Shown: positions 21,514 to 60,780, counted from the first letter of the stretch. The stretch is 64,000 bases of DNA from Amphiscolops sp. MND2022 (GCA_964187785.1 OZ076409.1:34844001-34908000), one strand, 5' to 3'. The notes: a model not told the origin generated them from the sequence alone. Program-made: numbers and translations.

Positions 21514-21532
21514 GACTCTACCTCAAAGAAAG

Positions 21533-23983: not shown

Positions 23984-23992
23984 GTCTCAAAT

Positions 23993-35309: not shown

Positions 35310-35399
35310 CAAGTTATATCAGTTTGAAAATGTTTTCCAGGGTACTCAGTGCTTAAGCACTGAGTACCCTGGAAAACATTTTCAAACTGATATAACTTG
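35310..35399. repeat. 90-bp perfect spacer-free palindrome centred on CTTAAG
   Basis: CAAGTTATATCAGTTTGAAAATGTTTTCCAGGGTACTCAGTGCTT|AAGCACTGAGTACCCTGGAAAACATTTTCAAACTGATATAACTTG. Confidence 0.95.
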
Positions 35400-36188
35400 T
35401 TTTCTCGGCTGTTGACCAGCGGCCCGCTTGTTGCCCTCTCAGAGACTACCGATGCTACCTCGGTAGCCCATCGGTAGAATTTTGGTGAATTATCAGTGAC
35501 CACCGGAAGATTACGATTAATTGCCGACCCAATGTGAAATCTTTTGTGATTCTAGACGTCAATTTTGCATTTTTCTGAAAACTTTGATAAAACTCTTGGC
35601 AAGATGATTATCAAGAGCGCCAAAAATATGTACGATCTCGCAAGATCTTGCCAACAGTTTCAAGAGAAAACCTAACAAATGTGAATGAAAATTGAAAAAA
35701 AAACTGAAGCAGAATAAAAATCGTCTCGAAGGTTTCAAGAGGAGTGACAGGAAACATGTAAGAATACGTTGGCAAGAATTTCAGGATAAAAATTTTTATC
35801 CTGAAATTCTTGCCAACGTATTCTTACATGTTCCCGGTCACTCCTCTTGAAACCTTCGAGACGATTTTTAATCTGCTTCAGTTTTTTTTTTCAATTTTCA
35901 TTCACATTTGTTAGGTTTTCTCTTGAAACTGTTGGCAAGATCTTGCGAGATCGTACATATTTTTGGCGCTCTTGATAATCATCTTGCCAAGAGTTTTATC
36001 AAAGTTTTCAGAAAAATGCAAAATTGACGTCTAGAATCACAAAAGATTTCACATTGGGTCGGCAATTAATCGTAATCTTCCGGTGGTCACTGATAATTCA
36101 CCAAAATTCTACCGATGGGCTACCGAGGTAGCATCGGTAGTCTCTGAGAGGGCAACGAGCGGGCCGCCGGTCAACAGCCCAGAAAACA
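35398..36188. repeat. ~790-bp spacer-free palindrome (arms about 395 bp, about 98% identical)
   Basis: Centre GGATAAAAA|TTTTTATCC at 35792/35793. The arms differ by about 6 substitutions and one homopolymer indel (A9 vs T10). Confidence 0.95.
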
Positions 36189-36909
36189 TTGCAAGTTCTG
36201 CAAGAAAAGTGTCAGCACAAGTTGAAACCAAACTTTTCACAAAAACTGTTATTCTTCAATTATTCGATGAAAGATTTTTACAGCTTTTTCTATTGAGATG
36301 TTGATGATTAAGCACATTCACCGGATTGGCCTGATGAATTTTTTTCAAACATACTGTTTCCATTGTTGCAAAATTTACAATGGTTGAAATAAGACTTCTG
36401 CATAGGTTTGATTGCGTTACAAAGTTTGTAAATTTCTGAAAACTTTGCTGGAACTATCGATTTCTCAAATTTAGTTGGAACAAGAGGGCACCGTATGAAA
36501 TCGGCACCCCACTTAAAGCTCAAAAGCACAAAGTCTCACTGAAATACTTAGTGTGGCTTTTAGAAATTTTTACATCTTTCACAGTGGCAAAAATATAAAA
36601 AACGGAATCTATAGCCTCGAAAACGCTTTTTGTCTCTGGCAAAGCTTTAAGAAAGACCCCAATTAGTGATTTTTTTCGAAAAAAATGCACAGTGCCAAAA
36701 AACCCAAAGATGGGCTTCTAGAAATTGACACAGAAGGGAACCCGTTGGTGAAATAATATAAATTTTCGATAAAACGTACAACGTGGAAAAACCCCAAAGG
36801 ACGGAACCCTTTGAGACGCCAAGGTTTGCAAACAGAGATTTCACTTCCTCGTTGTGCATCGAACCTGCGACCGTCTGTTTGGGCTATTGGTGACGTGAAC
36901 AAGTTCTGT

Positions 36910-37109
36910 NNNNNNNNNNNNNNNNNNNNNNNNNNNNNNNNNNNNNNNNNNNNNNNNNNNNNNNNNNNNNNNNNNNNNNNNNNNNNNNNNNNNNNNNNNN
37001 NNNNNNNNNNNNNNNNNNNNNNNNNNNNNNNNNNNNNNNNNNNNNNNNNNNNNNNNNNNNNNNNNNNNNNNNNNNNNNNNNNNNNNNNNNNNNNNNNNNN
37101 NNNNNNNNN
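36910..37109. other. Assembly gap (200 N)
   Basis: Run of exactly 200 N, a fixed length typical of scaffolding joins. Confidence 0.99.
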
Positions 37110-37307
37110 ATTTTAAGATATACGAAAGTATTATTTAACGTAAGTGTTCGACGTTTATTTACAAACATTTCCAACTGATACAATATCACAAAAACCTCGT
37201 TTGTAAACTCAGTTGCATTAACACAATGATGTTATGAAATCTAACTTTTGCCGGTTACTAATTAAGTTGCAGCATCAACTATATAACTATAACAATTTCA
37301 GGTATAA

Positions 37308-37570
37308 CAAGACGGGGACGTCTCAAGTGGGCGCTATATCTAAGGCTGAAATAAAATAATAAAATCGAAGGGGGAGCCTTTGGAGACAAAAAAATTAAAA
37401 GGTTACGTTTAAAAGTAAAAAACCAATTAGATGCGTTTCCCGGGTATTCGTTTAGTTTTCTTTCGTTGAACTTTAACGGTCGTCGCTTCGAGTCTGTCTT
37501 AAAAAAAGGAAAAAAACGAGTGACTGTAATAGTCGGGCTCTTTTATTAATAAACCGACTAAAAACAACTA
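37308..37570 (-). mobile_element. Helitron-like family A copy
   Basis: A|CAAGACGGGGACGTCTCAAGTGGGCGCTATATCTAAGGC terminus, then AATCGAAGGGGGAGCCTTTGGAGAC and AGTGACTGTAATAGTCGG...CCGACTAAAAAC, which are shared with 20170-20240, 40060-40350 and 47540-47890. Confidence 0.55.
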
Positions 37571-38445
37571 AAGTTAACGCTTCTCATCTGCGGCAAATTT
37601 TACAGCTAGGATCTCAAATTTGTTTCCAAACGCTATAGATGTAACAATTTTCAATTCGTATTGAACCAATTCAATGCTCTCAGATTTTCAAAACCCCAAT
37701 TAACCTGACGATGCTCTAGAGCAGTGTATATTTTTCAACTTTTGAATATTTTAGTTCCTTTTGTCGGTGGTTCGAGACCCAAATTACACCAATCTTTTTA
37801 TGCTTGCAAAAGTAGAGGAAAACCAAAAGATCTGATTTTTGGGATTTCTTCAGTACAATTTTTAAACAAAACTCCTTCCTCTGATTTTCAACAGGAACCA
37901 AGCTTTTTGGGAATACAGAGAATCTCTGAAGGTTTTGCGGCGCTGTGCGACTTCCAGACAATTTTTTGAGAAATAAATTCCAAGTTGCTCTTCAAATGTT
38001 TTTTGAAGAAAGTTTTTTCATACAAATTCATGTATTTTCCTAGTCTTTAGAATGACCTTTTGTAGTTGAAGGTGACAGATAAGTTCCAAGATTTGTGAGA
38101 AAGAACTTTTTCGGCTCTGCGCGTTTTTTAGGGAATTTTTTTCTGTTCACTAGATGTTAGTTGCTTCAGTTTTTTGATATTTTTTTCTGTTTAGAAAACG
38201 AGTTTTTTAGCCTAAAGTGTCACAACATGGAGTAGTTTTGGCACTGTGTGACTTTTTTCGAACCAAAAAAAATATCGGACAAAATATCGGAATAGTTTTC
38301 TCACACTTGCTTAAGTTGAAAGGTCCCTTTGGAAGTTATCCGTGGTAACAGTATACGAGAAAGATCGCAGTGCCACTGCGCCCCTTGGTTGTTTTTAGTT
38401 GTATTCTCCTAAAGAAATTTGGTGGTTACCGTGTGTATGTATGAC

Positions 38446-38962
38446 GGCATAGCGACAACTCATATCAAGCGACATTTCATATCAGGCAACAACTCATATC
38501 AAATTGAGAAAGCGACAACTCAAATCAAGCGATAAGTCATATCAATTAGTAAAAAGTGACAACTCATCGGGTTTGTCTATAGGTTACAAATACCTAAATT
38601 GTGATAATATCTAGTTGTAACAATTTATAATTAACTACAATAAGAAATTAGGAATTTTTTTTCCATTTTATGCGCTATACTCAAGATTACTTTCTCTCCA
38701 ACGCTTTTGGATGAAGGTGTGATTATATTCAAGACACTTATATTTACTATACAATCTTGTTTCTGTTTCATTATTTCTAGTAATTATTCATCAATTGACT
38801 AATTTTCTCTTATTATCTAATAAATTATTTAGGTTAACATTTCCTATGTAGATTTTGATTTTCTGATGTGAGTTTTGATTGATATGAGTTGTCGCTTTTT
38901 CAAATTGATATGAGTTGTCGCCTGATATGAGTTGTCGCTTGATATGAGTTGTCGCCGTGTGG
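38446..38962. mobile_element. Foldback/MITE-like element with arms built of 17-bp subrepeats
   Basis: Left arm GCGACAACTCATATCAA repeats (38452-38570), right arm inverted TTGATATGAGTTGTCGC repeats (38878-38956), AT-rich interior. TGTATGAC flanks both sides (38438-38445 and 38963-38970). Confidence 0.7.
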
Positions 38963-39851
38963 TGTATGACAGCGGCTAAGGCTGGGAATCAAATGCACAG
39001 TGGGATCTGGAATTAATATATTTTGTATGCTTGCCAATGTAAAGGGCAATAAAGGGGTCCTTCTAGGTGTTTTTCGGCAGTGCTTGACTTCATCTCTAAT
39101 CAGTCTCCTTAGTAAAACTATAAAATACTAAAAGGAGTTCCTCGGCCTTTTTGGGAACTTTTTGGCTTCTTCTCTCCAACCGGTGATGTTAGGTGAATAT
39201 TATAAAATTCATAAAAGTGGACGTTCAAGGGTAACTGGAGAAAATAAAACTTGCCACTGGAAGAATCTTGCACTTTTTTCTTGCGCCGAACATTTTCACA
39301 GTTTTATGATAAAACGCTCTAATTCTGATTTTTGGGTTTTTGGACGTAATTTTTGGTTGATTTCATAGTTTGCCGGGATGATTGTGGGGTTCCATTCGGT
39401 TCATTGTTCAACTTTTGTAACCTTTCAGTTTCAAAAATAATTTCTGTTCTCTGTTATAGCACCTGTAACAATAAAAAGGAGATATAACTCATATTTCCGA
39501 ATTATCGAATTATGTTAGATTTTGCAAAGACGAAGTCAAGAGAAACACTTTTTTCGAGTTGTCATTTGGAAACACTAAATGCTGATTTGCATTCTCAGAT
39601 CTATATACACAATTTGAGTTCAATGTTTTCCTAAACTTTTTTAACAAACATTTGAGGTCTCTATTTTTTCCAAAGGCGTATCAGCCGAATATACAAAAAT
39701 ATCGCAATGCCATTGGGCCTCTTGTAATAAACAAATTGTCTGTGGAAATTTTTTGAAAAACTCAATAAAAAATTGAAGCATATACATTCTCACACCCAAG
39801 GCTATTCATTCTCCGAAATATTTTTGACTTCCAATTCAGTTAAGTTAGTAA

Positions 39852-40350
39852 CAAGACGGGAACATCTGAAGCAGGGTGACCAACTGGTCACTAGTCAGTG
39901 ACCAGTCACTAAAACTCACTAAAGCGGTCACTATTTTATAACTGGTCACTAAATGTCACTAATTTCCAGGGTGACCAAATCGTCGGTTTAAACCGACCAT
40001 TCGGTTGATTTTTAAAGTCGGTTTTTCTCGGATATCAGTGAAAAAATATCAAAAAAATTGATGCGGGGACCCTTTGGAGACAAAAAAATTCTTTAAAAAG
40101 TCGCACAGTGCCGAAAAAAAATCGAAGGGGGACCCTATAGTCTCGTCCGGTTTTGCATCTTACGTTTAAAATGAAGTAAATGAAAGAGGGACCCTTTGCA
40201 TTAATTTAGATGCATTCCCGCTTGCCGGTCCAGTAGTTTAGTAGTTCTGTGAAAAGTGTCCACTTCGCATATATTCTGTTATCTGACGAAAAAAACTTGC
40301 TATTGTAATGATTGGGTTTTTTTACTTAAAAGGAAAATGCGCCGACTAAA
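39852..40350 (-). mobile_element. Helitron-like family A copy with CAGGGTGACCA-type TIR fragments inserted
   Basis: A|CAAGACGGGAAC terminus; CAGGGTGACCAA twice (about 39872 and 39967) with GGTCACTA subrepeats; then GGGGACCCTTTGGAGAC / TCGAAGGGGGACCCTATAG family motifs. Confidence 0.5.
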
Positions 40351-41163
40351 AACTAAGTAATTGGAGTCAAAAGAGAATTATTTAACGTGGAAAGAATTTT
40401 TCGGTTAGTCATCGTTGAAACATGTCTTTTATCAACATGTTTCCCAAACAGGGAAACTGGTTTCTGTCTGAATGAGTTCAAGTTCAAAAATGTCTTTTCT
40501 GTTTGGAAAATGAGCTTTTTGTATTTAGTCTCATGAAAAATGCAATCAGAATCACGAAATTGTGCATTTCTGAATTTTGCTGTCTTAATGAAGTGAAAAG
40601 GATATTTAGGTCATCAACTTCTTTAAATGATTCTAAAAATAGGTGTGAACAGAAAAGGAAAACCCCCTCCGTCTTGTCTGCACGCAGGAAGTGAAGGGCT
40701 TGGCGCATTTGAAAAGACATCCACAGGATGTGTAGATGGTTTTGGTCAATTAAATTGTGCGAAGGCTCCAATTGAAATTTTATTAGCGCTTTCAACAAAA
40801 TTGCACTCGTCTCAGACTCTTTCTCGTTTCCAAACTGGAGTGCATTGAAATTCTACAATTTGTTCTTTTGTTTCCAAATCTGTGCGTCTTTTATTTGAAG
40901 GGGGAACACCGTAGCGGTTGTCCCTTGGAGGTAAAAAGCATTCCGCTTAACGCTCTTTGTCTCGAAGCAACAGGTTGCTAGCCGAACACACTACTGATTG
41001 AACAACCAGAATTTCACGAATTCCCACTTGACGTATCAAAGTGTATGGACAAGATTGTCTCTAATGAATTTACAATGCAGACACAAGACAGCAGCTGCTA
41101 CCATATTCTGACGTTTTTTGGGGTAAAAGTAGCTGAGAAGTTGTCATTATTGATAACTTTTTA

Positions 41164-41701
41164 GGGGGGAAGTAAATAACTTCTAAATAAATAACTTCTA
41201 ATTAATATAGTAAACAACTTCTAAATAAATAAGTTCTAAAATTATTTTAGTAAATAACTTCTAAATTGCAATGGCATCTAGTAAATAACTTCCAAACAGC
41301 TATTTTGACGTAATTATTTCTATAACGTCGTTAGCTATGTTCACATACCCCTAGTGCCCTAAATGCAGGAGCGGAGCGACGTGCCATATGGCCATGCCTC
41401 AATGTTGCTACTTGGCGAAGGGAGCGAAGCGACTAGCGAGCCATACAACAAATATGCTAATCTTTTCAAATAACAGTTTTCGGAATAATAGAACGGTAAG
41501 TTTATTTTCGGAATAATGGAACGGTTAATTTATTTTCGGAAGAATGAATAGCAATCTTTACTAGAATGATTTCAGAAGTTACCAGACGCAAATGCATTTT
41601 AGAAGTTATTTACTAATATAATTTTAGAACTTATTTATTTAGAAGTTATTTACTAATATAATTTTAGAACTTATTTATTTAGAAGTTATTTACGTGATCC
41701 C
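41164..41701. mobile_element. Foldback element with GGG...CCC termini, long AAATAACTTCTA-based arms and a candidate 6-bp TSD
   Basis: Left GTAAATAACTTCTAAATAAATAA repeats (41172-41300), right inverted copies (41565-41693). TTTTTA on both sides (41158-41163 and 41702-41707). Confidence 0.7.
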
Positions 41702-44700
41702 TTTTTAGGATTGGATAAGATTAAGAAGCTCTTAACGCGTCGCCTCAAGTCCTTCTTACATGCGTTTTATTCAAGGTTGAATCATTTGTCCAGTATGGTA
41801 TGTTGAAAACTACATGCTTGGAAGCATGAAATCTTTTCGTGTGTTTTTAGTCGATGCTTTTTGTGAAAAGAAATGCCCGACTCCTACTGTGGCAACTTTT
41901 TTGTCAGACCACTGACCTTATCACTGAGAGGTCCACTTTTTGAACCCTTGATGTAATGTGCGTCCATGCGTCCCAAAGGGTCCCTCTTCGAATATTTCAG
42001 TTTTGGAGTTTTGGGTAAATTATCAAACTGAATGCGACCAAAAGGCTATTTTTGGCAATGTGCTACTTTTTTCAAAATTTCTAATTTCGGTTCTCTATTT
42101 GGATTTTTTTGATGTTTAAACTTTATCAAAACCCCTGAACATATTTGAAATGGGACTAGGTAGGCGAAGCGCCGGCTTGAGGCCTTCAAGTTTATTATTG
42201 TGTCAGAATTCATCGAAAAGCCTTAAAGTATTGAATTAATTTGAAAAACGAGTTATTTCTTGGTTAGCGAAACAATTAATACTTTGTTTTCAGCCAATAT
42301 TTTGTGTATGGTTATTTATAATCACACGGTGAGTGACAACTATTTTTCTGGGCGGACAAACAAAATTCAAGCATTGCCTAAGAAGACAGAATATTTTGCC
42401 AGTGAGGAGATTTCCTTGTCGGTTGGTGGAGAAGTGTAGTCAATCGCCGTGAAAGCATAGATCTCAATTCAAATACTTCTCACTTCTGAGGTTAACGGTC
42501 CGAGCCCCTTGGTGTTTCGATTTTGTCGAAAAATTTAGTCTACACCCAGGTTTGATTCTATTTATGGGCTTTTTCAAATTATGATAACCAGTTGGGATGT
42601 GGCACATAGCTAGCTTTGTGTCATTAACAGTTGTCTAATAAGTGAGAAAATAAATTGGTATATTTTTCAATGGTTGCCCGGTCGCAAGTGCAAGGCAACC
42701 TGTAATATTTCAGATAGTCAAACGAAATAATGAGGTGATAAAAACGACCGCAGGCTACAATTTCATTGCTGCTCTTTACTGAATCATCAATCATCTTCAT
42801 TCATGCAATTTTCCATCAAAGATCTGGCGCGGATAACGGTCAAAGCAATAAATTTGTTATCTCGCTTCAAAGCCTTAGCTGGGAACGAAATTACAGCTAA
42901 ATTAAAAACGGAAATTGTACGGTGCAAATCTTTGTGCAGAGCTTTGTTCAAATTTCTGCCGATTTGGCCGCAGTCCATGCACTGATGATGCATCACCTTT
43001 CTCTGGCATCAAAGTTAAAGTCCCATGTCAAATGATGGATCAGCTTATTCGCTGTCCTTTATGTTCTCTTTTGTAGAATACTATGTAAATTTCCTTAGAG
43101 AGTAGAATCATTTGGTAGGTGTCCAGCAAAAACCTTGTCAAATTTAAGGCCGTTTAATTTTCCATCAAAAGATTTTGTTCAACCATACCCAAAGAAGAGT
43201 TGGAATATATGGATTAGAGATTTTAAAAACTTGGATTCAGCTTTTGACCTCTATTTTGCTTTGACCTCGATTTCCCAAACTATGCGTTAAAGTTATAACT
43301 TTGATAGCTTTTGTGGGTCTTTTGTCTAAAGGAACAATTCTGAAATGCATTTGCGAATAACAATAGTTATAATCCAACCTTGAAAAATGATTCACTTTTC
43401 ACTTCAAGTTTTGTTTTTTATTTCACTGAAACGTTTGATCAGTGAGGTTCGCACGATATTTCAAACACATCTTTTTCGCATATTTGCATTAGAAATTTGC
43501 AGGCTCAACAACGTTCCACATCTTGTCACAACAAATTCTCGAGTGTTGCCCACCGATAGTTGCCGCTTTGCTTTCAGTAAGTGGTCTCTAGAAAGGAAAC
43601 ATAGAAAAAACCGACGCAGCGAACCTCTAGTGAAAAGTCTATCATAAAAACTATTAGTGAAAAGTCGCACAGAGCCGAAGAAATATCTTTTCACTGATAA
43701 CAAAGAAATCTCTCATCAGCCTCATACGACCAAAGAATAACTAGAGAGTTCACCCTTAACTTTCGGTTTGCATTAGAAAAAAGGTTCGCAAAAATAAAAA
43801 AAACTTCACAAAACCAAAGAAGTGTAAAAAATTTTTCGAGAGAAAAGTTCTTTGAAGTAGGATTCTTGAAATTTTTCACACACATCTTAAGGATGTTTAT
43901 TTATATTAACCCAATGTTACTATTGTTCGATAATCAGCGTCTGATTTTACTTACTTAAAACAATAAGCGAGAGCGACGTTAGGAGGTAAGCACATTAAAT
44001 AGATGTAATATTAGGTAAAAAAGGGTAGTGTGTCTCCTAGTAAATCCAATGTTTGCGAAGATGTTCTTTTGAAACTTGAGTGCCAACTGCGGCGAAAACA
44101 CCCATATCCGTAATTTTTCTCTGCCTTTTGTTCGTGAAATCTTCCTCCATGTCTAACAATGTACACCTACATTGTATTCTTCCAGAGTCCTCCTGATGAC
44201 AGTGGAGTCGCCATAGCGTCCCAATCAGATCCAATTGCAGGCTTAGCTGTGTCGATAGTCAAAACAGCACGAAGATGCAACCTTAGAACGTATCGTAAAT
44301 TACCAGGTGGTTGATTTGTGAATCGCAAACAATTAGCCTTTTTTGCGCGCAGCCCTCTTTGAATTGAACCATTCAAACTATTTACATTTCACATTTTTAA
44401 AACAAAGATTCATCAAACGTGAAGACGAATTAGTAGTTGTTGAACACCAAAAATGGGTTCCTGTATACAAACGTGCATTTGAAATGCCTCCAGCAATTTA
44501 AATATTCGTGGGAGAAACCGTACGAAAAAGCGGCCAAAGTTCATGAAATATTTTAAAGTCAGAAGCAGAATTTTGAATGCCAAAATCTTATAGAAGTCAT
44601 TATTGCGTCCGATCACGCTTCGACTACGTGTTGAGTAATTAGTAGTCTGTTGTGTTTTTTTTTCAAAGCACAACAACTAGTTGAAGAAGTCAGTTCAGTT

Positions 44701-46489
44701 CAATTCGTGAACAGAATAGAGCAAAATTGCAACGTTAAAACGTGCGATTGAGGGAAAGCAAGAGTAAAACTTCGTGTCTGCCACACGAAACGCACCAAAG
44801 CGTGTTAGAAAGCGAAAGGAGCGACCTTTCTAAAGCGCTGTGAGGTTCCGAACGCACAGCGAAAGTGAAAACGGCCGCCACACACTTTGAATTTTCCTCT
44901 TGCTTAATAAGAATCAAAAATCAACCTCGATTCTTCGAGAACGGAAAGAGTTATCGACTGACGGTTTCTGGCATTCGATAGCCAATTCAAGTGAGAGCTC
45001 AACTTTAAGGTATCAGCTTTTTGAAATAACTTGAACCTTGTGGAGAAAGCTTTGAAAACTAGGTTTTTTCAAAACTTTGGACGAATTTCCAAAACTGAGT
45101 TTCAATAAATAATTTCGTGTGATCGCCACTGGTGTCCAAAAAGAGGATTTGAAAAACAGTTTCAATTGAGCATGAGCGAACCATTTCAATTGTGGTAAGT
45201 GATGTTAAAAATTTTTTGTAATTTTTTTGTAATTTTCGGAAATTCAGTCAATATACCTCAAAAATGGTCTTGAATGGCCAAAAATGTAGTTTATTGCCTT
45301 TTATTTTTTTGTCCTCAACTTATAACCGCACAATAGCCGCTTTCATTTCAGCGTACTTGAGAATGGAAGTGAATAAGTGAATGACGTATTAAGTAGAGCG
45401 CTGCCGCGGGCTAGCGAATAGTCGCTCAAAATTGAAATTTGAGAATTCTTTCTGTCAGTAGCAAAACCGACCTATCTAAAAGCAAATTCATCGCACGTTC
45501 CGGGCAACTTGGAGCTGAAACGTTGTGGTCATGTGCATAAGATTATTGCGCATAGCCTTTAGCTGGAGCATTTTCCCGAAAAGGGTTATACAGGTGAGAT
45601 ATTGACTCGAAACGTTGGAGGTCAGGTCAACAATTTTGGAAAAAAATATTGTTTCCAGGAAAAGTGCCACCAAAATTTGTTGAGACAAGATGGAAACCTC
45701 ATCTACGGAACCAAAATTTCTTGTGGCTCGGGCTTTTGATTGATAAAAACCATACGTTGTACCTTTCAAACTGAAAAGGTACGGGTTCTTCAAAGTTGAG
45801 TTGGTTGTAGAATTTGAAAAATGATTTTCGACCCCAACTCCTTCAAGGGCGTGTTTCACCGTCAAGTAGTGAAAATAAAAAGCTGTCAACATGAAATTTG
45901 TTTAGCGTTTTAAAGGTTTATGCATATGGGTTACGTCAAATTTGCCTCAGGTGATCGGAACAGCTAGTTTTTGACCTTAGATGGTGTATCACAGAATCTG
46001 ATTTTTTGGAAAGTGAAGAGTACAAATATGCTTTTCTAAAATAAGCGTTTTTTACGCTTTTCTAAAATATTGCTAAGTGTTTCGTTAGATCAGTTTTTGC
46101 AAACGAGAGTTGTCAGAAATCGTGTGGGAAAAAGCAGCTTGACAAAAAGTGCAACTGTCAATCATTTAACTGAAATTAAAGTCGTGTTTGAAAAAGTGGG
46201 AAAAATTGAATCAGCGAAGGCCTTCCCTTAACTTTTATTTTATGTAAAACTACTAGTCTTGGTTGACAAGAAGGTGGAACTAAGAATCACAAGTGATTAG
46301 AAATTGCACTTTTAATGATACTGAAGTAGGAAAAAACGTCTCAAAAAATAGGCAGCTCCCAAAAAAGGAAGGCTGACATTTTACGAGTACCTATAAAATC
46401 AAACCGTCGAAAAGTTAACTTTGGCCGAAGTGTGTGCCGATTTGAAGTCTAGAGAACAGCTTCCTTCGTGTTGTGTTGGTGATTTCTTT

Positions 46490-49404: not shown

Positions 49405-49533
49405 GCCGGAGCACGACCACAACGACCCTCTGAGTGCACATGCGACTCTCAACGTGTTCAAAGCAATATCGGCGCCCATGTACTTGCTCACGGTCAACCC
49501 ATCAAACCCCATCCATGCCAGTCTCTCACTCAG
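49405..49533 (+). CDS. TRPC: TRPC-like channel exon (TRP_2 domain)
   Basis: TTTCAG acceptor; phase 2-2; 129 nt. Encodes (R)PEHDHNDPLSAHATLNVFKAISAPMYLLTVNPSNPIHASLSL(S), aligning with TRPC HS..RLN.YK.LASP.YL.L.S.DP...A..LS. Donor AG|GTTATT. Confidence 0.88.
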
Positions 49534-51299
49534 GTTATTATACAATGCTTCGCAACTAATATGCAACTTAATTAAGTCAATATTTTCCGCCCGTATTTCA
49601 CGATGGAGAATGAAAACTAATATCTCAGTCTGCGGACTTTTTAAACAAACTTTGCCGCACTTTATATTCACTCCAAAAAATCTTTTCCCCACAGAAGTTA
49701 ACGGCAACAAATAAGGTTCTTGTGAACTTTTCATTTGTTTCTTGGTAAAACATTTTTCTGAAAAAGTGCCTAGAAATTGAAAAAAACAAACGTGTAACTT
49801 TCTTGTTTCACTTCCATTTTATTGTTTCATTTTATATTTGGTACAATTTTTGAAAGTTTTCGTCGACATGAATATCCATCCCCAAAGCTCAACGACAACA
49901 CAAAAAGGTGCTGGGAATTTTTTTTATCACTGCAGAAAACAGAAGTTTTTGAAAAAGGGTTAAAAATGAACAAAAAAGTGCCCAAACCTTTACAACGCTG
50001 AAAGTGACTCTAGTTCTTGAGCAACTCCAGCAATCCGACAGCCTTTTGAAATTTGCGTTTTCATAGCTATGATAGAAACCGAGCGCGCTCAAATAATCCT
50101 CCAACAAACTAACAGCATTGAATCCAAACATTTTCTGTAACTTTCAGTAGAATTGTAGACCACTGGTGCATTACGGAGCTCTTGAGGTTTTAATAACGAA
50201 GACTAACAGGTAGTTCAAACACACATCGTGAACACAGTTTCAATTTTCCTCCGAGAGCGAACGAGCACTGCGAATACGCTGCATTTTTACCGTACGGCTA
50301 TACAACTTACCACCGTTGAAAAATTGTATTTGCTAATATAAATCACGGCGAAAAATATCTGGTGCTTAGTAAGCGCGTTGCTATTAAATGATTAAATGAT
50401 GAATGGACTTGAATTTTACTCTTTCAATCATGAAATTAATATTTCTCATCCTGGATAGCTGTCTCGGATATGTCGGTTGCTGCATTTTATTGTTCTAATG
50501 ATTTAAATCATTAGAGAATTCTCAGAACCGTCATCATTGCGCAGGAGAAATGGATTTTAACAATTAACATCTCCCTTGTCGAACTTGCGTGAACTTTTTT
50601 CACGTCAACATTGTTACTCAAAGTTGCTAGCAACTTGTATAATCAGTTTTCAAAACTTGTACTGAAGTTTCACGTGAAAATGTTTTCCTGCTGTATTCGA
50701 TGTTTATCAAGCTGCTTGGAAATTATAAAAGTTTTAGCGTTAATTTCAAGCCGTGTACATTACAGGTTTTCGCACAGGTTTTCAAAAGTTTCTGCAAGTG
50801 TTTAATTGCAGCTTTGACGCTAACAATCACTTGGTAACCTGCAATCTAGCGCGAACTTCAGCCGCTATTTGAGAACGGTGATTACAACAGATGAGTGGTT
50901 GAGAAATCAAAGTGTGCAACCAACGTGATCGTGTCGGTAACGAAGTGGGAAATGTTTTCAAAATTAATTGCAGTAGTGGAGGATACAATGTAATCCTACA
51001 AGATTTACCGCAGGGACCTTACAGATGTTTTTAGGTTTTATCAAAAAGTACTCTACATGCAGCCCTGCAGCATGTAAAAAAGTTCCAACAATCTCCACTG
51101 GGACTTTCAATAATTGTTTCATGGTTCACAGATTTCTGATTTTCAGGTTAAATTGAAACAGTTGCTCACACTAGGTTTTTTTTATTCAAACACAACCCTG
51201 CCAAGCAACCACTCGGTGGAAAAATGCAAAACCATTACGTGACATCTTTTGCACGGAAAGTTCCGTCCAAGAGAAACACTTGATGTCGAATAATCCTCA

Positions 51300-51925
51300 G
51301 AAAAATAGAAATGGCCCAACGTAGAATTTTGAGAGGCATTTTTTTCAAAAAAAAGTATGATTCCATAAGCAACATACTACGTCGGAATGGAGTATTAACA
51401 GTTTTTGAACTCTACATTGTTGAAGTAATGAAGGAATTGTTCCGACAACTACAATCAAAATCACCTAATTTGCTCCTCTCAAACATTGAAGCTACCACGA
51501 ATGACAAAATAGAAAGAAGATCTAAGCAAAAAAATCCTTTACCGCTCACCTGGAGTAGGACGATAGTGAAACAAAAATGTCTTACCAATGTTTTGATAAA
51601 ATGTCATAATTGGCTTAAACAATTCAATCTTTTACCCGAAGACCTTGCGACAATGAGTAAAACTCAAACTATGAAATTAACACAGAAAATTAGTTCGTTA
51701 TATGTTGTTGATAATGAGCAACTTGTGACATTATTCTTTTAGGAAGTGGTTTATCTTTCTCCTAACTGAAAGGGTACCTAACTGGTTTTCAAGGGTGGAA
51801 ACTCGAAGAGCTATTAAGCTCCTTTTCCATCCCAATTGGATAATAATTCATCTTTGTATGAAATAGAATATTATTTTATTTAATATCTTTAGCCAATTAA
51901 ATTAACTTATCTTATCTTATCTAAT
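51300..51925 (+). mobile_element. 5'-truncated LINE (CR1/L2-like) 3' fragment with a (CTTAT)n tail
   Basis: ORF 51311-51742 (KIEMAQRRILRGIFFKKKYDS...LTVFELYI) resembles the post-RT C-terminus of CR1/L2-clade ORF2. It is followed by a 3' UTR and CTTATCTTATCTTATCTAAT at about 51906-51925. Confidence 0.7.
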
Positions 51926-52893
51926 CCTACTCTACATCGATTGACAGTAAAAAGCTGCTGATTGTGTTTTTTGTGACGGAGAAGCTTTTTTTGTTGAAAT
52001 TAACACTTTCTTATACGATTTTGGTTTGTTTCAGACGTAAAATTTTGCTACTTCGGAAAACAATATAAAAAAGTTCGGATCATTTTTGCTGGAATTGTCA
52101 AAACAGCTTTAGAAACAATTCCTCAAATATTTGTTACCATATCAATTTTTTTCCTTCTTGCAGAAGTTTGTAAAGTATAAATGTGGTTTACGTGTTAGGG
52201 GATAAGATATTGGACAATTTCAATGTTCACACGCAAATTTCAATGCCCCATTTTTAACGAAGAGTCTAATTGTCAAAAACCGGCAACCTTGCAAGATTCT
52301 TCCAAGATATTCAAAGAGACTGCTTTTTTCTTAAATTCTTTACTGAATCATGCGAAAGAACCTAGCGAGAAAACCATTTTCTTCACGAATCTCGTAACCA
52401 ATCTTCTTGAAATTTTTCTCAAGATCTACATGGCTTACAGCTACCATAGCTCGGTTTATTTTGAAGTGCTCAACTTGCAGTCGAAATCATAGATTGGAAA
52501 TTTTATTGGCTGAACTCAATCGTTTAGCAAGTGGTAATAACTTGGTAGGCTCAATTAATTGCAATAATCCTCAATTTTCTCAATTCACTTAGCAGGATGC
52601 CACCGAGCGGATATCTTCCGTTCTGAACAATTTTGGCGACAACATGTTCTTAAGGCTCGTAGCAACGAAGCTACGAATCTTGTTACAATATTCAAATTTC
52701 GGACATTCTTTATTTCATTTTGCTTTTTCCTGGAAAAGTCTTCTTTTCTTTATAAAAGTATGTTAAGTAACCTTTGGTTTTGTTGTGGAACTGTGGATAA
52801 TAATACCCGCTAAAAAATAAAAAAATTTTAGAAAAAGGCGCCAATGAAAATTTTAAAACTTTTTAGTTAATTTTATGCGTTTTGTTTCAACAC

Positions 52894-53072
52894 TGTTGTA
52901 CCTGTATAGTTGAAGAAATCAGTGCTATACGAAACTACATTTTGTATCCCATCAATTGCTACTGAGTAAAGTTTACATCGTAAGCATATTAAAATAGTAG
53001 CAGGTACTTGATACTAAATAATAAATATGAAATGATAACAGTGTCTCATAGTAGTTTGTCCACTATAACTCA
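52894..53072 (-). repeat. Gypsy 3' LTR (179 bp)
   Basis: TG...CA termini; roughly 88% identical to the uninterrupted parts of 57963-58380; PPT complement CTTCCCCCTCC at 53073-53083. Confidence 0.85.
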
Positions 53073-54230
53073 CTTCCCCCTCCGTGATTAAACGAGAATT
53101 GGATAATGAGGGAATGTGACTCTCTTCTGAGGCGGTTGTCCGGCCAAAGCTGTATTGTTTTTCCACGGTGTTCCGCGTGGTGTCCTTGTTAATGATCCGG
53201 TTTTCGAGTGGTTCTTCCTGACGGGCCAATTTGTGAGGCTGTTGTATTGGTTGTCCATGTTGTTTTTTGTGGCCGGTGTAGTTTCCCGCTCGTTCAGTCT
53301 TTTGACTGTATTTCTTCTAATCAGATGGTACTGGATTATTTAATCTAATAATCGAGTTGGTTTAGGTTGGACGTATTGATCTACGTAAATTATCTTCTTC
53401 CCCTCTGTTCAGATTTTTGTAACTATTTTGAATTACTTTACCGTTATTGTCTCTAATGTGTATTTCGGTGTTTGCCCTTCTGGCATCTTCAATGATGCGG
53501 TCTACTTCCGCGTCTGTCATGTTTTCCTGTACAATGGTCGGCGGTCCGGTGGTTTTGTTTTGTTGTTGGGCCATTTGTGTTGATGGCCCCCCGAGTGAGC
53601 CACGGTTTTGCCCGTTCCGGTTCAATTTCGTTCTCCCAAGTGTTCCACTTCTTTGCGGTGTAATGGCTGTTTTGCCAGAATCTGAGGTGGTGGAGGTAGG
53701 AGTTACCGACAATGCATCTCCAAGGTTGCTCTCTGAATCGTGGACATTGTTTATCCTTGGGGACTCGATAGAGTAGCCATCCGGTCCCTTTAGTTCTGTT
53801 CCGCTGTTGTTGGGTTCTTGTGTAAGCTAAAAACATTTTTTTACTTATGTGTTTTCTTATGTTTAGTGTCCGATATTGCAACTTGAGTTTTATCGAGGTA
53901 TGCAATGTCGAACTTTGGTTTTGTAATCTTTTTCTCATGGAAAAAAACGGATAAACACCAAATCGTTGGTTACTTTATTCTGTTTCAACGTTTGCTGCTC
54001 AGTTACACCGCCAGTTCTCTTGGATAAGTGCGCTTGTAATCATTTGTTATAGTTTTCAACGCATCAAGATTTAGCAAATTGCTGATTTCGCTGTTTGGTT
54101 CGCTATTGCAGTTCAGTTCAAATGCGGATTTTTTAACTGCGCGTGTGGCGTTTTCCGCATTACATCGAATTCTAAGTCTAGCGCTCAACCAATTTTTTTT
54201 GCCTGCTTTTATATTGGCCAGTAGTATTTT

Positions 54231-54761
54231 TTACCGTTCTAATTCTGCGTTCATCCAGTGCTGTGGGGGTGTGTATATTCCGTGTCCCGTATAAAAGTTT
54301 TTTTTGGTGATTTTTGCAAAATCCCTAAACGTTCGGCCCGTAAATGCTGTGGCTTTACCGGTCTTATTTGTCTTTGAAATACCGTTTATGTTTAGGTATT
54401 TTTCCGAAATGTAACCGCTAATTTTTCCATCGGTCGTTGTACAAAGGCTAGTCACCGGCCAATCACTGAAGCGGTTCATTGAAAGTTGTATATAAAATCT
54501 TTGGTTCTTTTCGGTGATTGGACCAATGAAATGCAAATGGATTTCTTCGTTGTGTTTATTCAGCGATGGTAATTGTCTTTTTTCCGGACTTAGTACATTA
54601 TGTTTAATATTCTTACCGAACATTTTACACAGGACGCAACCGTCGCAATTCTTCTGTACAGCTTCGGTAGTTCTTGGCCACCAAAAATGCCCTGCTGCCA
54701 TAAAGATTTCGTTTGTTGCTGGGTGTCCTTCGTGAAGGAGGCTGATGACGGTTGTCCTCAA
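54231..54761 (-). pseudogene. Gypsy integrase remnant
   Basis: LHEGHP...WWP...CDGCVLC (H2C2 finger), IHLHFIGPI (degenerate IHLDF.GP), KATAFTG. Confidence 0.8.
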
Positions 54762-55929
54762 ATTCTTCTTAGAATAACAGACCGTATATAGTTAAAAGCT
54801 TCTTCTTGTATAGCATGTATTCCTCCAGAATACTTCCATGTTGCTGGCCAACGAGGCAGACAAGTGCTTCGAGGAAGCTCGGCTCTTTAGATGTCTAGGT
54901 CATGAGTACCGGTGAATCAGTAGAGAAATTAATTCCCGTCTCTTTTACAGTATTTCTTAAATCCAAGTTATTGCGCTCACCTGAGTCCACTTTTGGTGCG
55001 TTGCCATTCATGATATACTGGACGCTTTCAACGCCATAGTATTTTGCCCAGTTATCTGCCGGAACTTCTATACTTGACGGACTTAGGTCTGTCTCTGATC
55101 CAATTTCTCCTTCCAACGGAATATGCTTCTAGTATATTTGTTCGTTTTGTTGTCAAGAGGGTCCGGGTTTGTCTTCTTGGTGCGATTGTCGGCGTTGTGG
55201 ACTGTCTACTCCCCAAAAAGTGTCCACCATCCAATTTTCGTACCGCCTCTCCGGCGGTTGGAAACCTTGAGGCTGCTGGTGTCTTTGTCCGCTTTCAATG
55301 TTTTGGATGGCTAGTTGCAGTTGTTCTTCTAAACTTTCTTTCATTCCGGAAATGTTTCGGCTCGTAGTATTTCTTCCAGCTGCCACCGGATTATCGGTGA
55401 ATTCCCGTTTGACAATATCTCTCCATCGGGCAATCAAAATTTCTCGTTTCTACAGATGGGTCTGCGCTTTTCAAAATGCCGATGGTTCTTGCGTCCATGC
55501 TCGGTTTATTTTGTGCTGTTATTCAGTTTATCGTTCGATTAAGGAAAGTTATGGTAGTTTGTTCACGTGTTTTGGAATGCTTTGGTTCGCTGTTCGGTTT
55601 TGCGCGCTGTGATTGGTCCAAATGGTTACTAAGGCAACCGTATTTGGTAATGAATTTGTAGTGCAGTTTGATGCTGTTGATTACGTATTCTTCGTCGTAT
55701 GCGTCATTCACTTGTGGTGATGCAGACGGATTTCTGCTGAAAAAATCCGTGAGTACCAAGTGTTTACCAGCTATATGATTTACGTTAATAGAAAAACACG
55801 CTAGTCGATCTAGCCATCTAGTTAGCCGTTAGACGTTTTATAAGATCGATTACGTTTAATTAGCCGTTTTAAAGGTTGGTGATTAGTGACCAATTTTATC
55901 GGTTTTCTGTGTATGTATAGGCGAATGTG

Positions 55930-57450
55930 TTAAAGTCACCATTCCACCGCCACTATTTCCAGTTCATTGATGGCGTATTTTGTTTCCGTGTCGGGAAGAA
56001 AATTAATGGCAAATCCGATCGGTTTTAATTTACCACCTGGTTGTTCGTGCCGTAGAATGGCCCGAGGCCCTTTGTGCTTGCATCCATTTTTCTTTTGTTA
56101 GAATAATTTGATCTACATTGTGCTAAACACGGTATTTCCGTGATTTTTTGTTTCAAGTTTTCAAATGATTTCGTATGCTCTTCTGTCCGTTTCCAATTGG
56201 TGTCCTTTTTGAGGAATTGTATTAGAATATCTGTTTGGGCAGAAGGTTTTCAATGTATTTAGACAATAATTGGATAGCGCCTAAAATTGAGTTCAGTTCT
56301 TTTTTGTTCGCTGGTTTGTTCATTTCTTTGATTGTTCGTAGTTTGTCTTGTGACTGTCTGATTCCGTTATCATTCTAACTTTTGTAACTGATCCATTCTT
56401 GTTCGGTTTTGAATAGTTGTTCGAATTTGCTTTCCGCTCAGTCTATAACCGGCATGTACCAATTCCGATATGAAGTCCATCAATTCGTCCAAATGTTTTT
56501 GTTTGGTGCCTTTTGTGACAACTATATTGTCGTAGAGCCATCCTGAATGATTTTCCCCAGTGTTTGGTCGATTTTTTCCCGAAATGTTGTTGGGATGTCA
56601 GCTAACCCGTAAAAGCCATTAGGAAATTGGTAGTACCCAGCGAAGTTTCCTCCGGTAACCGCGAAAAGGCATAGAACCATTGCTTTTTTCGAGAGTTGTA
56701 GTTCATCATATGCGTAGTCTAAGTCAAATTCTGAAAGCCAGTTTTCGTCCGCCGGTCCATCCACTATTTTTTCTCGGAATTCTCGATATTGAAATCTTCC
56801 ATGTTAGACATATGTGTCTTTCTATTTACCGTTAATTCGTTCAGTAATATCGACTCAAGCGTAACTTCTGATTTGATCTTCCTATTTCACGGTTCTTATT
56901 TACAAAACAGTTTTCATTGATGTTTTCAGATTCCTCGATGTGTCACTGGTTTTTGAGTGTTTCATATTTCTCTTCAAATGCGGGTTGTAAGTGAATTGGT
57001 ATAGGTCTGCTTTTTTGTTGTATGAGTTTTGCCCCTTCTTTTAGCTGTATGTCCACTTCCACATTCTTTACTGTGTGAGTTTTTGTAAATAGTTTTTTGG
57101 AACTTACATTTCAGTGTTGCTCTTTCTCGGTACGGTCCACAGCTGGTTTGGTCCGTTTTGTTCATGTGTTGACTGACTGTTTGGTTGTCTTGATCCGTTT
57201 TTGGGGTGATGCCCAGCTTTCCCACCCAGTCCAGTCTGAGTAATGAGTGTCTTTGTCTGGTTGTTATTAGCAACTCCAGTTGCTTCTTTATGCTGTCTAT
57301 TTTGATGTTTTCTGTCGTTTTCCCTTCCAATTTTGTTTTAGTATTGTTCACGTCTCGCTAATCTTCCCGTTACCGGTTTAATTGTTGTTATATTGTTGAA
57401 TTGTATCTTCGGTATTAATGTTACCGGTGAGCCTGTGTCAACAATGCATT
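55930..57450 (-). pseudogene. Gypsy protease / RT / RNase H remnants
   Basis: IVDTGSPVT near 57430; SEFDLDYAY...GYYQFPNGFYGLADIPTTFREKID (RT, 56522-56764); DASTKGLG...PIGFA..FL.DTETKYAINELE (RNase H, about 55960-56085). Frameshifted. Confidence 0.85.
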
Positions 57451-58058
57451 TTATCGGTCGGTTATTGACCAATAGTGTTTTGGTATACAACGGGAGCCCG
57501 TTCCACTTTTGACTCCCATTGAGTTTTATTTTCTGTGGATGGAATGTGTTCAGTCCGGTTTCCAGTCATCCTCGTCTGGACTGTATGTTTCTTCATCTTC
57601 TATATGGTTTGTTTTCCGTGTTGATCGGCAACATTTTGCATATTGTCCTGTTTTTTTTTCACGCACATTTTTACCACAATTTACGCAATTTTATTGGACA
57701 AATTTCCGCCACCGCAAATTCGCACTGGAGCTGTCGTGTTTTTCTAAACTGGGACTTTTGCGTGCGGGCTCAGTCCCCCGTTCTCATTTTGTTCCCGTTG
57801 TGTATCAACCGGCTGCTCGTTGATTTATCGGTTGTCCAATTGGACTGTCCCCTGTCGGCGGAGGGGTGTTGTTGGTGTCAACCATTCTTGGGTTATCTGT
57901 TTTTAGGATAATTTTTTGTTGGCTTAAACGTAATTGTCAGTTAGTCTGACACTGACTGGCCATGTTGTAACTGTATAGTACAAGAATTCAGTGTTATACG
58001 AAACTGTATTTGGTATCTCATCAATTGCTACTGAGTAAAGTTTACATCGTAAGCATAA

Positions 58059-58293
58059 CAAGACGCCCGCTCAGCACCGGGATATTTTCCGCTATAAAAA
58101 ATGTAACGCTACAGCCCGGGTTCAAACCCATGACCTCGTGCCTGACAGGCAGACGCACTACCAACTGTGCCACGGTGACTAGTTTATCGTTTCACCAAAT
58201 GGAGTTAATGAAAGTGGAGTTTTGTCAGAATTTGTAAAAAAAACGCAGCACAGATCATGATTTTTTGCCCCCATTCATGTGAGCGGAAAATAG
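58059..58293 (-). mobile_element. 235-bp Helitron/Helentron-like element (family B) carrying a tRNA-like head
   Basis: Precise A|T insertion into the LTR without a TSD. 11-bp subterminal inverted repeats TATTTTCCGCT (58083-58093) / AGCGGAAAATA (58282-58292). Hairpin plus CTTG end shared with 25937. Confidence 0.75.
58108..58179 (-). ncRNA. tRNA-Asp(GTC)-like Pol III head / pseudo-tRNA
   Basis: GTCACCGTGGCACAGTTGGTAGTGCGTCTGCCTGTCAGGCACGAGGTCATGGGTTTGAACCCGGGCTGTAGC: A-box TGGCACAGTTGG, Asp-like loop CTGTCA, B-box GGTTTGAACCC. The acceptor stem does not pair, so it is not a functional tRNA. Confidence 0.6.
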
Positions 58294-58756
58294 TAAAATA
58301 GTAGCAGGTACTTGAGGCTAATTAATGAATATGAAATGATAATAGTGTCTCGTAGTAGTATGCCCTCTAGCTATACTTCAGATCTTCTCAAAAATTTGCT
58401 AAGCCGCTGATTTTCATGCCCACTTTAAAATCCAAATTTTGCAGATATTTTTATTATTTTTTTAAATTGAAAAATGGGCACATTTTTAGGTAACACTTTT
58501 GTTTCGGTGCTTTTTTCAAAACCTTCAAAAACACAAATGCTAAAAACTATTTTTCTAGTAGTTGAATTCCGTGGAAGATCCCCTATCTATTGACTAAAAT
58601 TGAAACATAACAAATTTAGGGGGAAAACGCGCCTGAATTAGTAATTTTTGTTTTCACAGAAAAATTGATTTTCAATAACGAATTTCCAAAATAAATAAAT
58701 ATGAAGTAGGAACAAAAATATTGAAAACTGTGTGATGACTCATGTTACCGCTGCAG

Positions 58757-58955
58757 TCACGAGCTGGACCGTTGGTCAATGTGGGAGTACGAGTTTTTCG
58801 AAGATTACCACGAGATGAGCTGCACGATGGAGCAGTTCGCTGTGGAGCTGCTCAAACTCACCCACCCTGAGGAGTTGCACACCCTTCTGGTGCAGGGACC
58901 CAACGGCAACTACCTCGAAACCTTACAGTACTCTGTCGACCTGGAACGTAAAAAC
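58757..58955 (+). CDS. TRPC: TRPC-like channel exon (helical linker before the pre-S1 region); the gene continues beyond the window
   Basis: CTGCAG acceptor; the first T completes Ser with the previous exon. HELDRWSMWEYEFFEDYHEMSCTMEQFAVELL...LQYSVDLERKN aligns with TRPC EL..L...E.EFK.DY..L...C..FA..LL...L..A....KKFV. Donor AAC|GTGAGT. Confidence 0.9.
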
Positions 58956-59736
58956 GTGAGTAATTCTCGTGTCCTTCTCTTGATTATTTCTGAATCATTT
59001 CTTTGTTCAAGAACAGCATACATCGCGGCCCAGAAATACGAGAAAACAGCTTCAGCAGCGAAAGTAAATCGCAAAATTAGGATATGCCGTTAAAATGGTA
59101 CTTCGGAATAGGATCAAGGTTGAAACTGTCAAACTTTCGCAGGTACAAATGTTGTTAAGGACTTCGGAAGGTAATGTTTTAAAAGTACACATCGGTTACT
59201 GGGTTTTTATCTTTTTTGCTATAAATATTTGTTTTTCGTACAACATTTTTAGACAACAATCATACATTCATGTTAAACATACTTGTATATGACTTGTTTT
59301 CTTAATTTCCACTTATACATGGGAAAATACTAGAATTCCAATTGACACTCAAATTGTGAAAACTATTGCAGAAAACTTGAAGTTTCTTGAGAGTATATTA
59401 TCGAAAATTCGAACGAAGTTTTTTCCCCCGAAATTCATAGAAACGCAAGATTTGTTTCTGAACCTTTCAAAGTTGGCGACCAGAGAAGAATTTTTTTGAA
59501 TATTTTATGCATATCGCACGTGGTCGCCAACTTTAAAAGGTTCTGAAAGAAAACTTGCGTTTCTATGAATTTCGGGGAAATTTTTATACACATTGGTAAA
59601 AAATTACAGTGAAGAATTTCTCCAAAGCAGTGGCATAAGAGCTCACATTTAAATCTCCGTAACATTTGTTTTTGATTCTTCCAAATCTCAAGTCCTTGAA
59701 AAAAGCACGGAAAAATACTCCGAGGTGGCTGGAATT

Positions 59737-60004
59737 CCAACAAGACGTCTTGGATTCACCTGGATTGTGTATCTGCGTTTGAAATCAATTAGGCTACTGC
59801 ATTTCCATACATGGTCAATTTGAACTCTTGTCCTGGTCACAAAAGGTCAATGTCCAAAAAAGTTTGTCTTAAGACAAACTATTTTGGACATTGACCTTTT
59901 GTGGCCAGGACAAGAGTTCAAATTGACCATGTATGGAAATGCTGTAGCCTAATTGATTTGAAACGCAGATACACAATCCAGGTGAATCCAAGACGTCTTG
60001 TTGG
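59737..60004. repeat. 268-bp spacer-free palindrome centred on CTTAAG
   Basis: 134-bp arms with 4 mismatches; centre AGTTTGTCTT|AAGACAAACT at 59870/59871. Confidence 0.95.
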
Positions 60005-60688
60005 TATAGAAAACTATCTAAATTCTGATTCAAAAGTAGAAACAGTCTGTTTTCATTCATTTCTCCTAATAGCAGTTTTCCCAGATTACACACCAAATTA
60101 TGGTAACAAAATATAAACTGTGCTCTGAAAATATATTTTTACTTCATTCATTTACCGGTCAGGAAATTTTTGTAGCATTGCAAAATTTCTCTGGAAGACA
60201 AAAAACGAATACCAAATCTAATTGATCAATGAACCGGACTGAGATTCTTTTTATTTCTCCCTTCGTGAAAATATATAGTTTGCATCAAGGTATATATTCA
60301 CAAAGCGACAGTACGGCACCGCAGTGTTTCACATTTGTAGAAAAACAAAAGTTGAAAGTTGAAACAAAATGGTATGAAAACAATGGAACATAGAAGCATG
60401 CGCGGAACACAGAAAAACTATATGTGAAAAAGAAATGTGATTCCACCTGTCGAAGTAGAAGCATCGGCGTAATTGAAAAGTTGATGAATTATTGATATAT
60501 GACCTGCTCAGTCGTTTGCACAAAAAAGGGTACTTCTGTGTTATATCCATGTGAGCTGCCAGCCGCAGCCGTGTTGAAGTAGCCAGCTCGAAGATTTAGA
60601 AGCTTCATCAAAATTTAATCACAGTCTTTTTTCTTTATCCACGTTGCGGTCGGCGACGGCGGCCCAAAAACACAACAATTTAAACTCA

Positions 60689-60780
60689 TGTTTTTTGATG
60701 CCTTTGCTCTGAAGACGACCTGTTTACAAGCTTATAAGCTTGTAAACAGGTCGTCTTCAGTGCGAAGGAATCAAAAAACA
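60689..60780. repeat. 92-bp spacer-free palindrome with a 52-bp perfect core
   Basis: Perfect core CTGAAGACGACCTGTTTACAAGCTTA|TAAGCTTGTAAACAGGTCGTCTTCAG (60709-60760); the outer 20 bp have about 4 mismatches. Confidence 0.92.

Follow-up and report, generated by a model that had tools for sequence, protein, structure and literature searches.

Abutting loop-less palindromes in the Amphiscolops genome as candidate scars of fold-back double-strand-break repair

Abutting palindromes built from adjacent sequence

We analyzed a 64-kb stretch of the genome of Amphiscolops sp. MND2022 (GCA_964187785.1 OZ076409.1:34844001-34908000; hereafter the window, with positions counted from its first letter) that carries several long palindromes with no loop between their arms. 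Judging from translated reading frames, these palindromes lie in putative introns of one TRPC gene. We found that the inserted DNA consists of inverted copies of directly adjacent unique DNA, that palindromes of this kind abut as pairs, and that the same structure recurs at unlinked sites in the genome. We propose that each palindrome is probably the scar of an inaccurate repair of a double-strand break in the germline, in which the broken ends were extended by fold-back copying and then joined.

An initial annotation of this DNA had described four spacer-free palindromes whose arms are mutually unrelated, and both points held when we combined an inverted-repeat search, a centre-by-centre scan and arm alignments across the window. 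P1 (35310-35399) has arms of 45 nt with 0 differences around a TTAA centre, and P2 (35398-36188) has arms of ~395 nt that differ by 6 substitutions and one A9/A10 homopolymer indel (1.5%) around an AATT centre. P3 (59737-60004) has arms of 134 nt with 4 substitutions and 0 indels (3.0%) around CTTAAG (4-mer TTAA), and P4 (60689-60780) has arms of 46 nt with 3 substitutions (6.5%) around TTATAA (4-mer TATA). The spacer is zero in all four, and their arm divergence spans 0-6.5%, a narrower range than the 0 to about 9% given initially. Our first scan, which required a perfect 6-bp centre, revealed no further zero-spacer palindrome with arms of at least 14 nt in the 64 kb, and a 200-kb random sample from twelve chromosomes contained none with arms of at least 18 nt and only three with arms of 15-17 nt. 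P1-P4 are therefore not chance occurrences. A second, seeded scan that allowed mismatches and spacers added three features. One is a fifth zero-spacer palindrome, P5 (32623-32690; arms of 34 nt, 3 mismatches, 8.8%, centre TTATAA). The other two are inverted repeats of unique sequence that sit in the second cluster, beside P3 and P4: I7 (59423-59580; arms of 57-60 nt at 92%, spacer of 38 nt) lies 157 nt to the left of P3, and I12 (60780-60875; arms of 28-36 nt, spacer of 24-34 nt) abuts P4.

P1 and P2 form a single block in the order A-A'-B'-B. Here, A (35310-35354) is the left arm of P1, which we take as the original left side of a break and which read contigs cover in both of the samples described below; A' (35355-35399) is its perfect inverted copy, taken as inserted; B' (35398-35792) is the left arm of P2, taken as an inserted inverted copy of B; and B (35793-36188), the right arm of P2, would be what originally lay to the right of the break. 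The inserted block of this scar is 35355-35792. The two palindromes overlap by 2 nt (TG), since the last two letters of A', which ends at 35399, can also be read as the start of B' at 35398. P4 adjoins I12 within 0-3 nt on the same plan as P1/P2, with the difference that one side is looped, and we read I12 as the second, loop-bearing fold-back of P4's scar. The four palindromes had been seen initially as two pairs: P1 and P2 truly abut, but P3 and P4 are 684 nt apart, and the actual partner of P4 is the spacer-bearing I12. No abutting partner was found for P3 or P5, even at a low threshold.

An independent pair on another chromosome

A second, independent abutting pair came from ~25 kb of quasi-random flanks of repeat copies and lies at 35.82 Mb on chromosome C2. 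Its first palindrome has perfect arms of 96 nt (L033 1363-1458 and 1460-1555) and its second has perfect arms of 124 nt (L033 1556-1679 and 1681-1804). Both centres are a single C between A/T pairs. The two palindromes abut exactly (1363-1555 / 1556-1804), are single-copy and lie more than 3 kb from any N. As in P1-P5, I7 and I12, the inserted DNA of the C2 pair is the reverse complement of directly adjacent sequence. The overlap at the junction, 2 nt (TG) in P1/P2, 0-3 nt in P4/I12 and 0-3 nt in the C2 pair, lies in each case within a microhomology range of 0-5 nt, and so short an overlap is also possible by chance. An unpaired loop at the fold point is absent from P1-P5 (0 nt) and from the C2 pair (1 nt), and is present only in I7 (38 nt) and I12 (24-34 nt). 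Moreover, in the two verified pairs the members match each other in centre type (P1/P2, 0/0 nt; C2 pair, 1/1 nt), which hints at one end chemistry per event.

Unique long palindrome loci with a spacer of at most 3 nt numbered 0 in the 200 kb of random sequence, 1 in the ~25 kb of repeat-anchored DNA and 3 in the pre-selected window. The palindrome-forming process recurs genome-wide, at a rate that is constrained only to about two orders of magnitude. That a recurring process and not a one-off artefact was at work had been suggested from the window itself, and this suggestion is borne out by the presence of P1/P2 in reads and by the independent abutting pair on another chromosome. Because the window was chosen for its palindromes, it gives no fair test of the clustering of these loci.

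Fold-back copying at broken ends as the favoured origin

We propose that the event would start with a double-strand break between A and B, after which one or both ends would gain, in inverted form, a copy of their last 34-395 nt. Two routes are conceivable: the end might become a hairpin, with opening far away from the tip followed by fill-in, or a resected 3' tail might snap back on itself and prime synthesis. The extended ends would then be joined through 0-3 nt of microhomology. Two-sided events would leave abutting A-A'-B'-B blocks, namely P1/P2, the C2 pair and P4/I12 (with one looped side), and one-sided events would leave the single palindromes P3 and P5. In this scheme, we infer the break as the start, the identity of the copied arm, the enzymes acting and the timing in the germline. 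A covalently closed hairpin end fits the 0/1-nt centres better than snap-back does, and I7 and I12 fit snap-back directly. Among the mechanisms offered initially, hairpin-capped breaks and template switching both fit the A-A'-B'-B order, but nothing in our analysis points to an HUH/rolling-circle enzyme or to a Helitron, and the speculative role as intronic dsRNA sources likewise finds no support.

Several documented pathways resemble this scheme in part. Snap-back synthesis-dependent microhomology-mediated end joining (SD-MMEJ) is documented (PMC5728401, PMC2943611), and Pol theta extends stem-loops from as few as two terminal base pairs (PMC11292364). As described in Drosophila, worms and mammals (PMC2943611, PMC5728401, PMC11292364), this repair likewise produces an adjacent reverse-complement insert at either or both ends with a few nt of microhomology, and the loops of 24-38 nt in I7/I12 fit it. 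However, its inserts are mostly <30 nt and have an unpaired loop between the primer repeats, whereas the arms found here measure 34-395 nt and have symmetric centres of 0 or 1 nt. Fold-back insertions at HO breaks in yeast range from 5 to >150 bp, originate at an inverted repeat of 10 bp whose loop is 41 nt, and show 0-5 nt of microhomology at the other end (PMC11724301). They share with our scheme the fold-back priming at a resected end, the extension by a replicative polymerase, the 0-5 nt of microhomology and the inserts of >150 bp, but they start from a pre-existing inverted repeat with its loop and are one-sided. Finally, hairpin-capped ends are made by Pol delta when Mre11/Sae2 fail, and the corresponding inverted duplications are chromosome-scale dicentrics and not small local insertions (PMC10622511).

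Replication template switching without a two-ended break, either of the short template-switch type or of the type of fork stalling and template switching (FoSTeS) or break-induced replication mediated by microhomology (MMBIR), could also place reverse complements side by side. Here, the nascent strand at a stalled fork would take the complementary or nascent strand as its template, copy backwards and then go back to its place. A single such event makes reverse-complement copies of adjacent sequence together with new hairpins (PMC5453318), and the short template-switch mutations seen in natural variation are, like our palindromes, perfect inverted repeats made in one step from neighbouring sequence. 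One switch-and-return would be adequate for P3, P5, I7 and I12, which template switching explains as well as a break does, and the four inverted duplications within 1.45 kb (59.4-60.9 kb) resemble a multi-switch event. The abutting pairs are harder to obtain in this way, given that A-A'-B'-B would need three precise switches, one of them to a template ahead of the fork. Abutting pairs are, moreover, the form that recurs in this genome. The reported mutations are replication-based, mostly tens of nt in length, replace or insert one segment, and would not naturally yield abutting double palindromes (PMC5453318). We regard template switching as an unlikely origin of the palindromes as a class, though one with fair explanatory reach for the single ones and for the group of four at 59.4-60.9 kb.

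A hairpin-forming transposase offers another source of closed ends. hAT, Transib, RAG1 and Muta1 form hairpins on flanking DNA that are opened by host enzymes and leave footprints (PMC5499845), so that excision or off-target hairpins of a hAT, Mutator-like, Transib or RAG-like enzyme, if opened off-centre, might give giant P-nucleotide palindromes on both sides of a break. Such enzymes predict spacer-free centres and two-sided scars, as in P1/P2 and the C2 pair, and the concordance of centre type within each pair (0/0, 1/1) suggests one chemistry at both ends. The P-nucleotide footprints of V(D)J recombination and of hAT, Transib and Mutator-like elements (PMC5499845) likewise add palindromic, spacer-free DNA to each side of a single break, on the same A-A'-B'-B plan. 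Their P tracts, however, are only a few nt long, against 45-395 nt here (10-100 times longer), and transposon footprints lie between copies of a target-site duplication (TSD), which are absent here: neither in P1/P2 nor in the C2 pair do A and B carry a TSD-like direct repeat at their inner ends, and the TSD test for hAT elements or Mutator-like elements (MULEs) is negative in both pairs. No element remnant is present, and both C2 centre letters are C, without evident relation. We consider an origin from a hairpin-forming transposase improbable.

Read support and copy number

The contigs of one read study, with two samples (S1, three runs; S2, one run, X4), were placed on 35000-36900, a region that covers P1/P2. 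In S1, a contig enters arm A from the left flank. Centre 1 is crossed by contigs in all four runs, in S1 by a contig of 60 nt (35310-35369) and in S2 by one of 197 nt (35173-35369; depth 40.6 compared with 66-91 in the flank). In all three S1 runs, the A'/B' junction lies inside a contig at 35370-35459 that shows 0 differences, and S1 contigs from 35430 or 35448 to 35807 pass through centre 2, again with 0 differences. On the right, contigs starting at 36109 or 36127 in S1, and at 36065 in S2, continue into the flank. The contigs end 15 nt beyond each centre; a 31-mer graph must stop 15 nt past the centre of a perfect palindrome. In S1, the inner part of arm B has no contig of its own, probably through bubble removal between two near-identical arms. 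The depth at the A'/B' junction is 18, 7.8 and 15 in the three S1 runs, compared with 33.8, 19.4 and 26.8 in the left flank; this depth of about half that of the flank suggests that the P1/P2 scar is heterozygous, although mean contig depth is a rough measure.

P1/P2 are not an assembly error. An origin from fold-back or chimeric long reads, or from a mis-join near a contig end, might be suspected because P1/P2 lie 0.7-1.6 kb from an assembly gap and because the read support covers P1/P2 only, with P3 and P4 outside it. Fold-back artefacts do exist: they affect ~0.6% of Nanopore genomic reads, fold halfway along the read, are specific to the single read and hardly occur in HiFi data (PMC12870357). 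Artefact reads run backwards to the read end, whereas we observed short palindromes between normal unique flanks on both sides. At P1/P2 the fold is neither confined to isolated reads nor continued to a read or contig end; instead, contigs of three runs contain the junction and both centres, with a depth near half that of single-copy DNA, and centre 1 occurs in the second sample as well. The differences between the arms of P2 are substitutions concentrated at CpG sites and look like real mutation and not read error, the arms of P3 and P4 differ by substitutions only, which argues for real, aged DNA, and the C2 pair lies clear of any N. An artefact is, in our view, very improbable.

The assembly gap itself (36910-37109) consists of 200 N, is the only N run in the window and lies 721 nt to the right of P2, in no palindrome. 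Contigs of the read set continue past 36900 toward it. The gap looks to leave order and orientation right, with only the exact distance between the two clusters uncertain. In the 0.8 kb to the right of P2, we also observed six small variants relative to the assembly (36419, 36598, 36732; 36145, 36332, 36669) across runs of both samples, and the locus is polymorphic or heterozygous there at roughly 0.3-0.8%.

Searches of the whole assembly (1.07 Gb) with the arms of P3, P4, I7 and I12, and with the DNA between them, matched only the two arms themselves, and P5 is single-copy as well. For P2, other matches in the genome are confined to arm positions 128-305, an old dispersed repeat of ~180 bp that occupies 35527-35704 in arm B' and, as a mirror copy, 35881-36058 in arm B. 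This repeat is ~80% identical to more than 950 candidate copies genome-wide, and its two copies in the arms of P2 show 0 base substitutions between them. Because the copies are free of substitutions between the arms but only ~80% like their family, the duplication of the arm is far younger than the insertion of the repeat. Single-copy arms and an unsubstituted repeat pair together point to a recent inverted duplication of ordinary resident DNA.

The random sample also yielded an example of what an element-borne palindrome looks like. At L016, a near-palindrome of 267 bp with a 3-nt spacer is internal to a young, high-copy element, a 551-nt stretch of which (L016:2250-2800; G000:C1:80002250-80002800) has 40 full-length matches at 95-100% identity. 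We therefore excluded it from the loop-less class. The palindromes of the window show no flanking TSDs, and the initial proposal of a class of zero-spacer palindromic mobile units fails on this point and on the single-copy arms; copy number in the 1.07-Gb genome rules out the mobile-element reading. Mobile palindromic units (foldback elements, or miniature inverted-repeat transposable elements (MITEs) made wholly of inverted repeats) or selected hairpin-RNA genes are scarcely credible, for although the shape is like that of foldback elements and P2 would give an RNA duplex of ~395 bp if the intron were transcribed, every arm is single-copy, the arms are mutually unrelated and decay freely, TSDs are lacking, and the true element-borne palindrome at L016 behaves otherwise.

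Centre composition and arm divergence

All five palindromes of the window (P1-P5) have AT-only centres. Against a background chance per centre of 0.387 (from dinucleotide content) or 0.45 (the AT-only share of self-complementary 4-mers), 5 out of 5 corresponds to p = 0.009 or p = 0.018. The AT-only bias is real but mild: the shared centre chemistry proposed at the outset holds as an enrichment of this size and amounts to a weak bias only. CTTAAG and TTATAA each occur twice among the centres, which is no extra signal once the centres are AT-only (p = 0.13). We also considered a piggyBac or restriction-like TTAA chemistry and rejected it, as these repeats add nothing beyond the AT-only bias and the AATT centre of P2 does not fit.

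The arms diverge by 0, 1.5, 3.0 and 6.5% in P1-P4 and by 8.8% in P5, and a test of one common rate gave p = 0.085 for the four palindromes and p = 0.027 for the five. Different ages, as had been read from the divergence, are thus suggested but not shown. In P2, the differences cluster near the centre and the outer end, and the middle 274-285 nt have none (p about 0.002-0.003). Of the 6 substitutions, 4 (35406-35429 and 35749 versus 36157-36180 and 35836) are at CpG sites, a class that covers about 8% of the positions in the arms. On B', two of these CpG-site differences are changes from CpG to TpG/CpA. At the three outer differences, S2 carries the bases of arm B (36157, 36168, 36180), which identifies B' as the changed arm at these positions. 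The CpG-biased changes on B' may reflect targeted methylation of the copy, or chance, and with such a bias the divergence cannot serve as a clean clock. Across the whole window, CpG is not depleted (observed/expected 0.92).

Gene context and other features of the window

Three TRPC exons were recognized by reading translations on the + strand. The first is a TRPC ankyrin-repeat exon in an open frame at 34949-35098, upstream of P1, with its exon end unmapped; the second, at about 49405-49533, lies between the clusters; and the third, from the TRP_2 region, is in an open frame at 58779-59093, upstream of P3. These exons (34.9, 49.4 and 58.8 kb), which lie on both sides of the assembly gap, share the + strand and are collinear; the stretch that separates the clusters is thus not inverted. 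We accordingly rejected an inversion of the 24 kb between the clusters, that is, a single two-break event. The palindromes had also been described as lying shortly 3' of a TRPC exon. This is the case for P1 and P3, which are a few hundred nt downstream of exon-bearing frames, but not for P5, and we attach no weight to it.

Elsewhere in the window, a BEL/Pao-type long terminal repeat (LTR) retrotransposon occupies 20293-24754 on the + strand, with long open frames for an aspartyl protease, a reverse transcriptase, a Pao peptidase A17, an integrase zinc domain and DUF5641. A fragment of an integrase zinc domain is found at 54231-54761 on the - strand. Two MITE-like units of ~500 bp (38451-38955 and 41163-41702) have inverted ends of 30-85 nt made from short tandem repeats, 290-460 nt apart, and are unlike the loop-less palindromes. 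Over 6 kb at 52000-58000, the AT skew is -0.19 to -0.35, a strong strand asymmetry.

Weight of the evidence and implications

Several observations weigh against fold-back repair of a break as the origin of the palindromes. The allele that preceded the event (the empty site) was not found in the assembly, either directly or as a haplotig, the joint of 35354 to 35793 is not present in the read contigs, and the contiguity of A and B before the event is our own inference. The centres of 0 or 1 nt are unlike what snap-back predicts, because priming needs an unpaired loop of several bases, as in I7 and I12. For the hairpin route, we know of no pathway that opens hairpins 45-395 nt from their tip, and arms of 134-395 nt exceed most described fold-back insertions. 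S2 lacks the A'/B' junction as well as everything within ~75 nt of centre 2 on both arms. Its contigs, however, are very short (the longest is 6.2 kb), with ends that coincide with or lie close to TTAA and GATC sites (35173, 35354, 36065), which suggests a restriction-cut, probably Hi-C, library, so that its holes in coverage are uninformative and do not amount to absence. Lastly, three loci lie inside 28 kb of one gene, a clustering that is unexplained. As a matter of speculation, it could be due to the fragility of long palindromes (reviewed in PMC7999016).

A broader possibility, which we raise tentatively and hold to be doubtful, is that the germline of this animal routinely turns both ends of a break into self-copied hairpins of tens to hundreds of nt, with the concordant centre type of each pair pointing to one defined end chemistry. 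If true, hundreds to thousands of polymorphic double fold-back palindromes would be expected genome-wide, as a lineage-specific signature of repair. Possible causes would then be that hairpins are weakly opened near the tip, that the fold-back polymerase is unusually processive, or that a hairpin-forming nuclease has gone unrecognised.

Long perfect palindromes are regarded as unstable and as rarities in the genomes of animals. Scars of fold-back repair, for their part, are familiar mainly from experimental systems and tumours, as insertions of between a few and some tens of bases. The class of mechanism that we favour, fold-back copying at broken ends, is known; what departs from the standard is the size of the arms, the lack of loops at the centres and the recurrence in a germline genome. 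For genome annotation, our findings mean that loop-less palindromes of this kind are neither transposons nor, as far as tested (P1/P2), assembly errors. Measuring 90-790 bp, probably heterozygous and recurring at unlinked single-copy sites, these natural scars would provide a natural catalogue of germline break processing in a non-model animal, and they would be a source of new hairpin-forming DNA inside genes.

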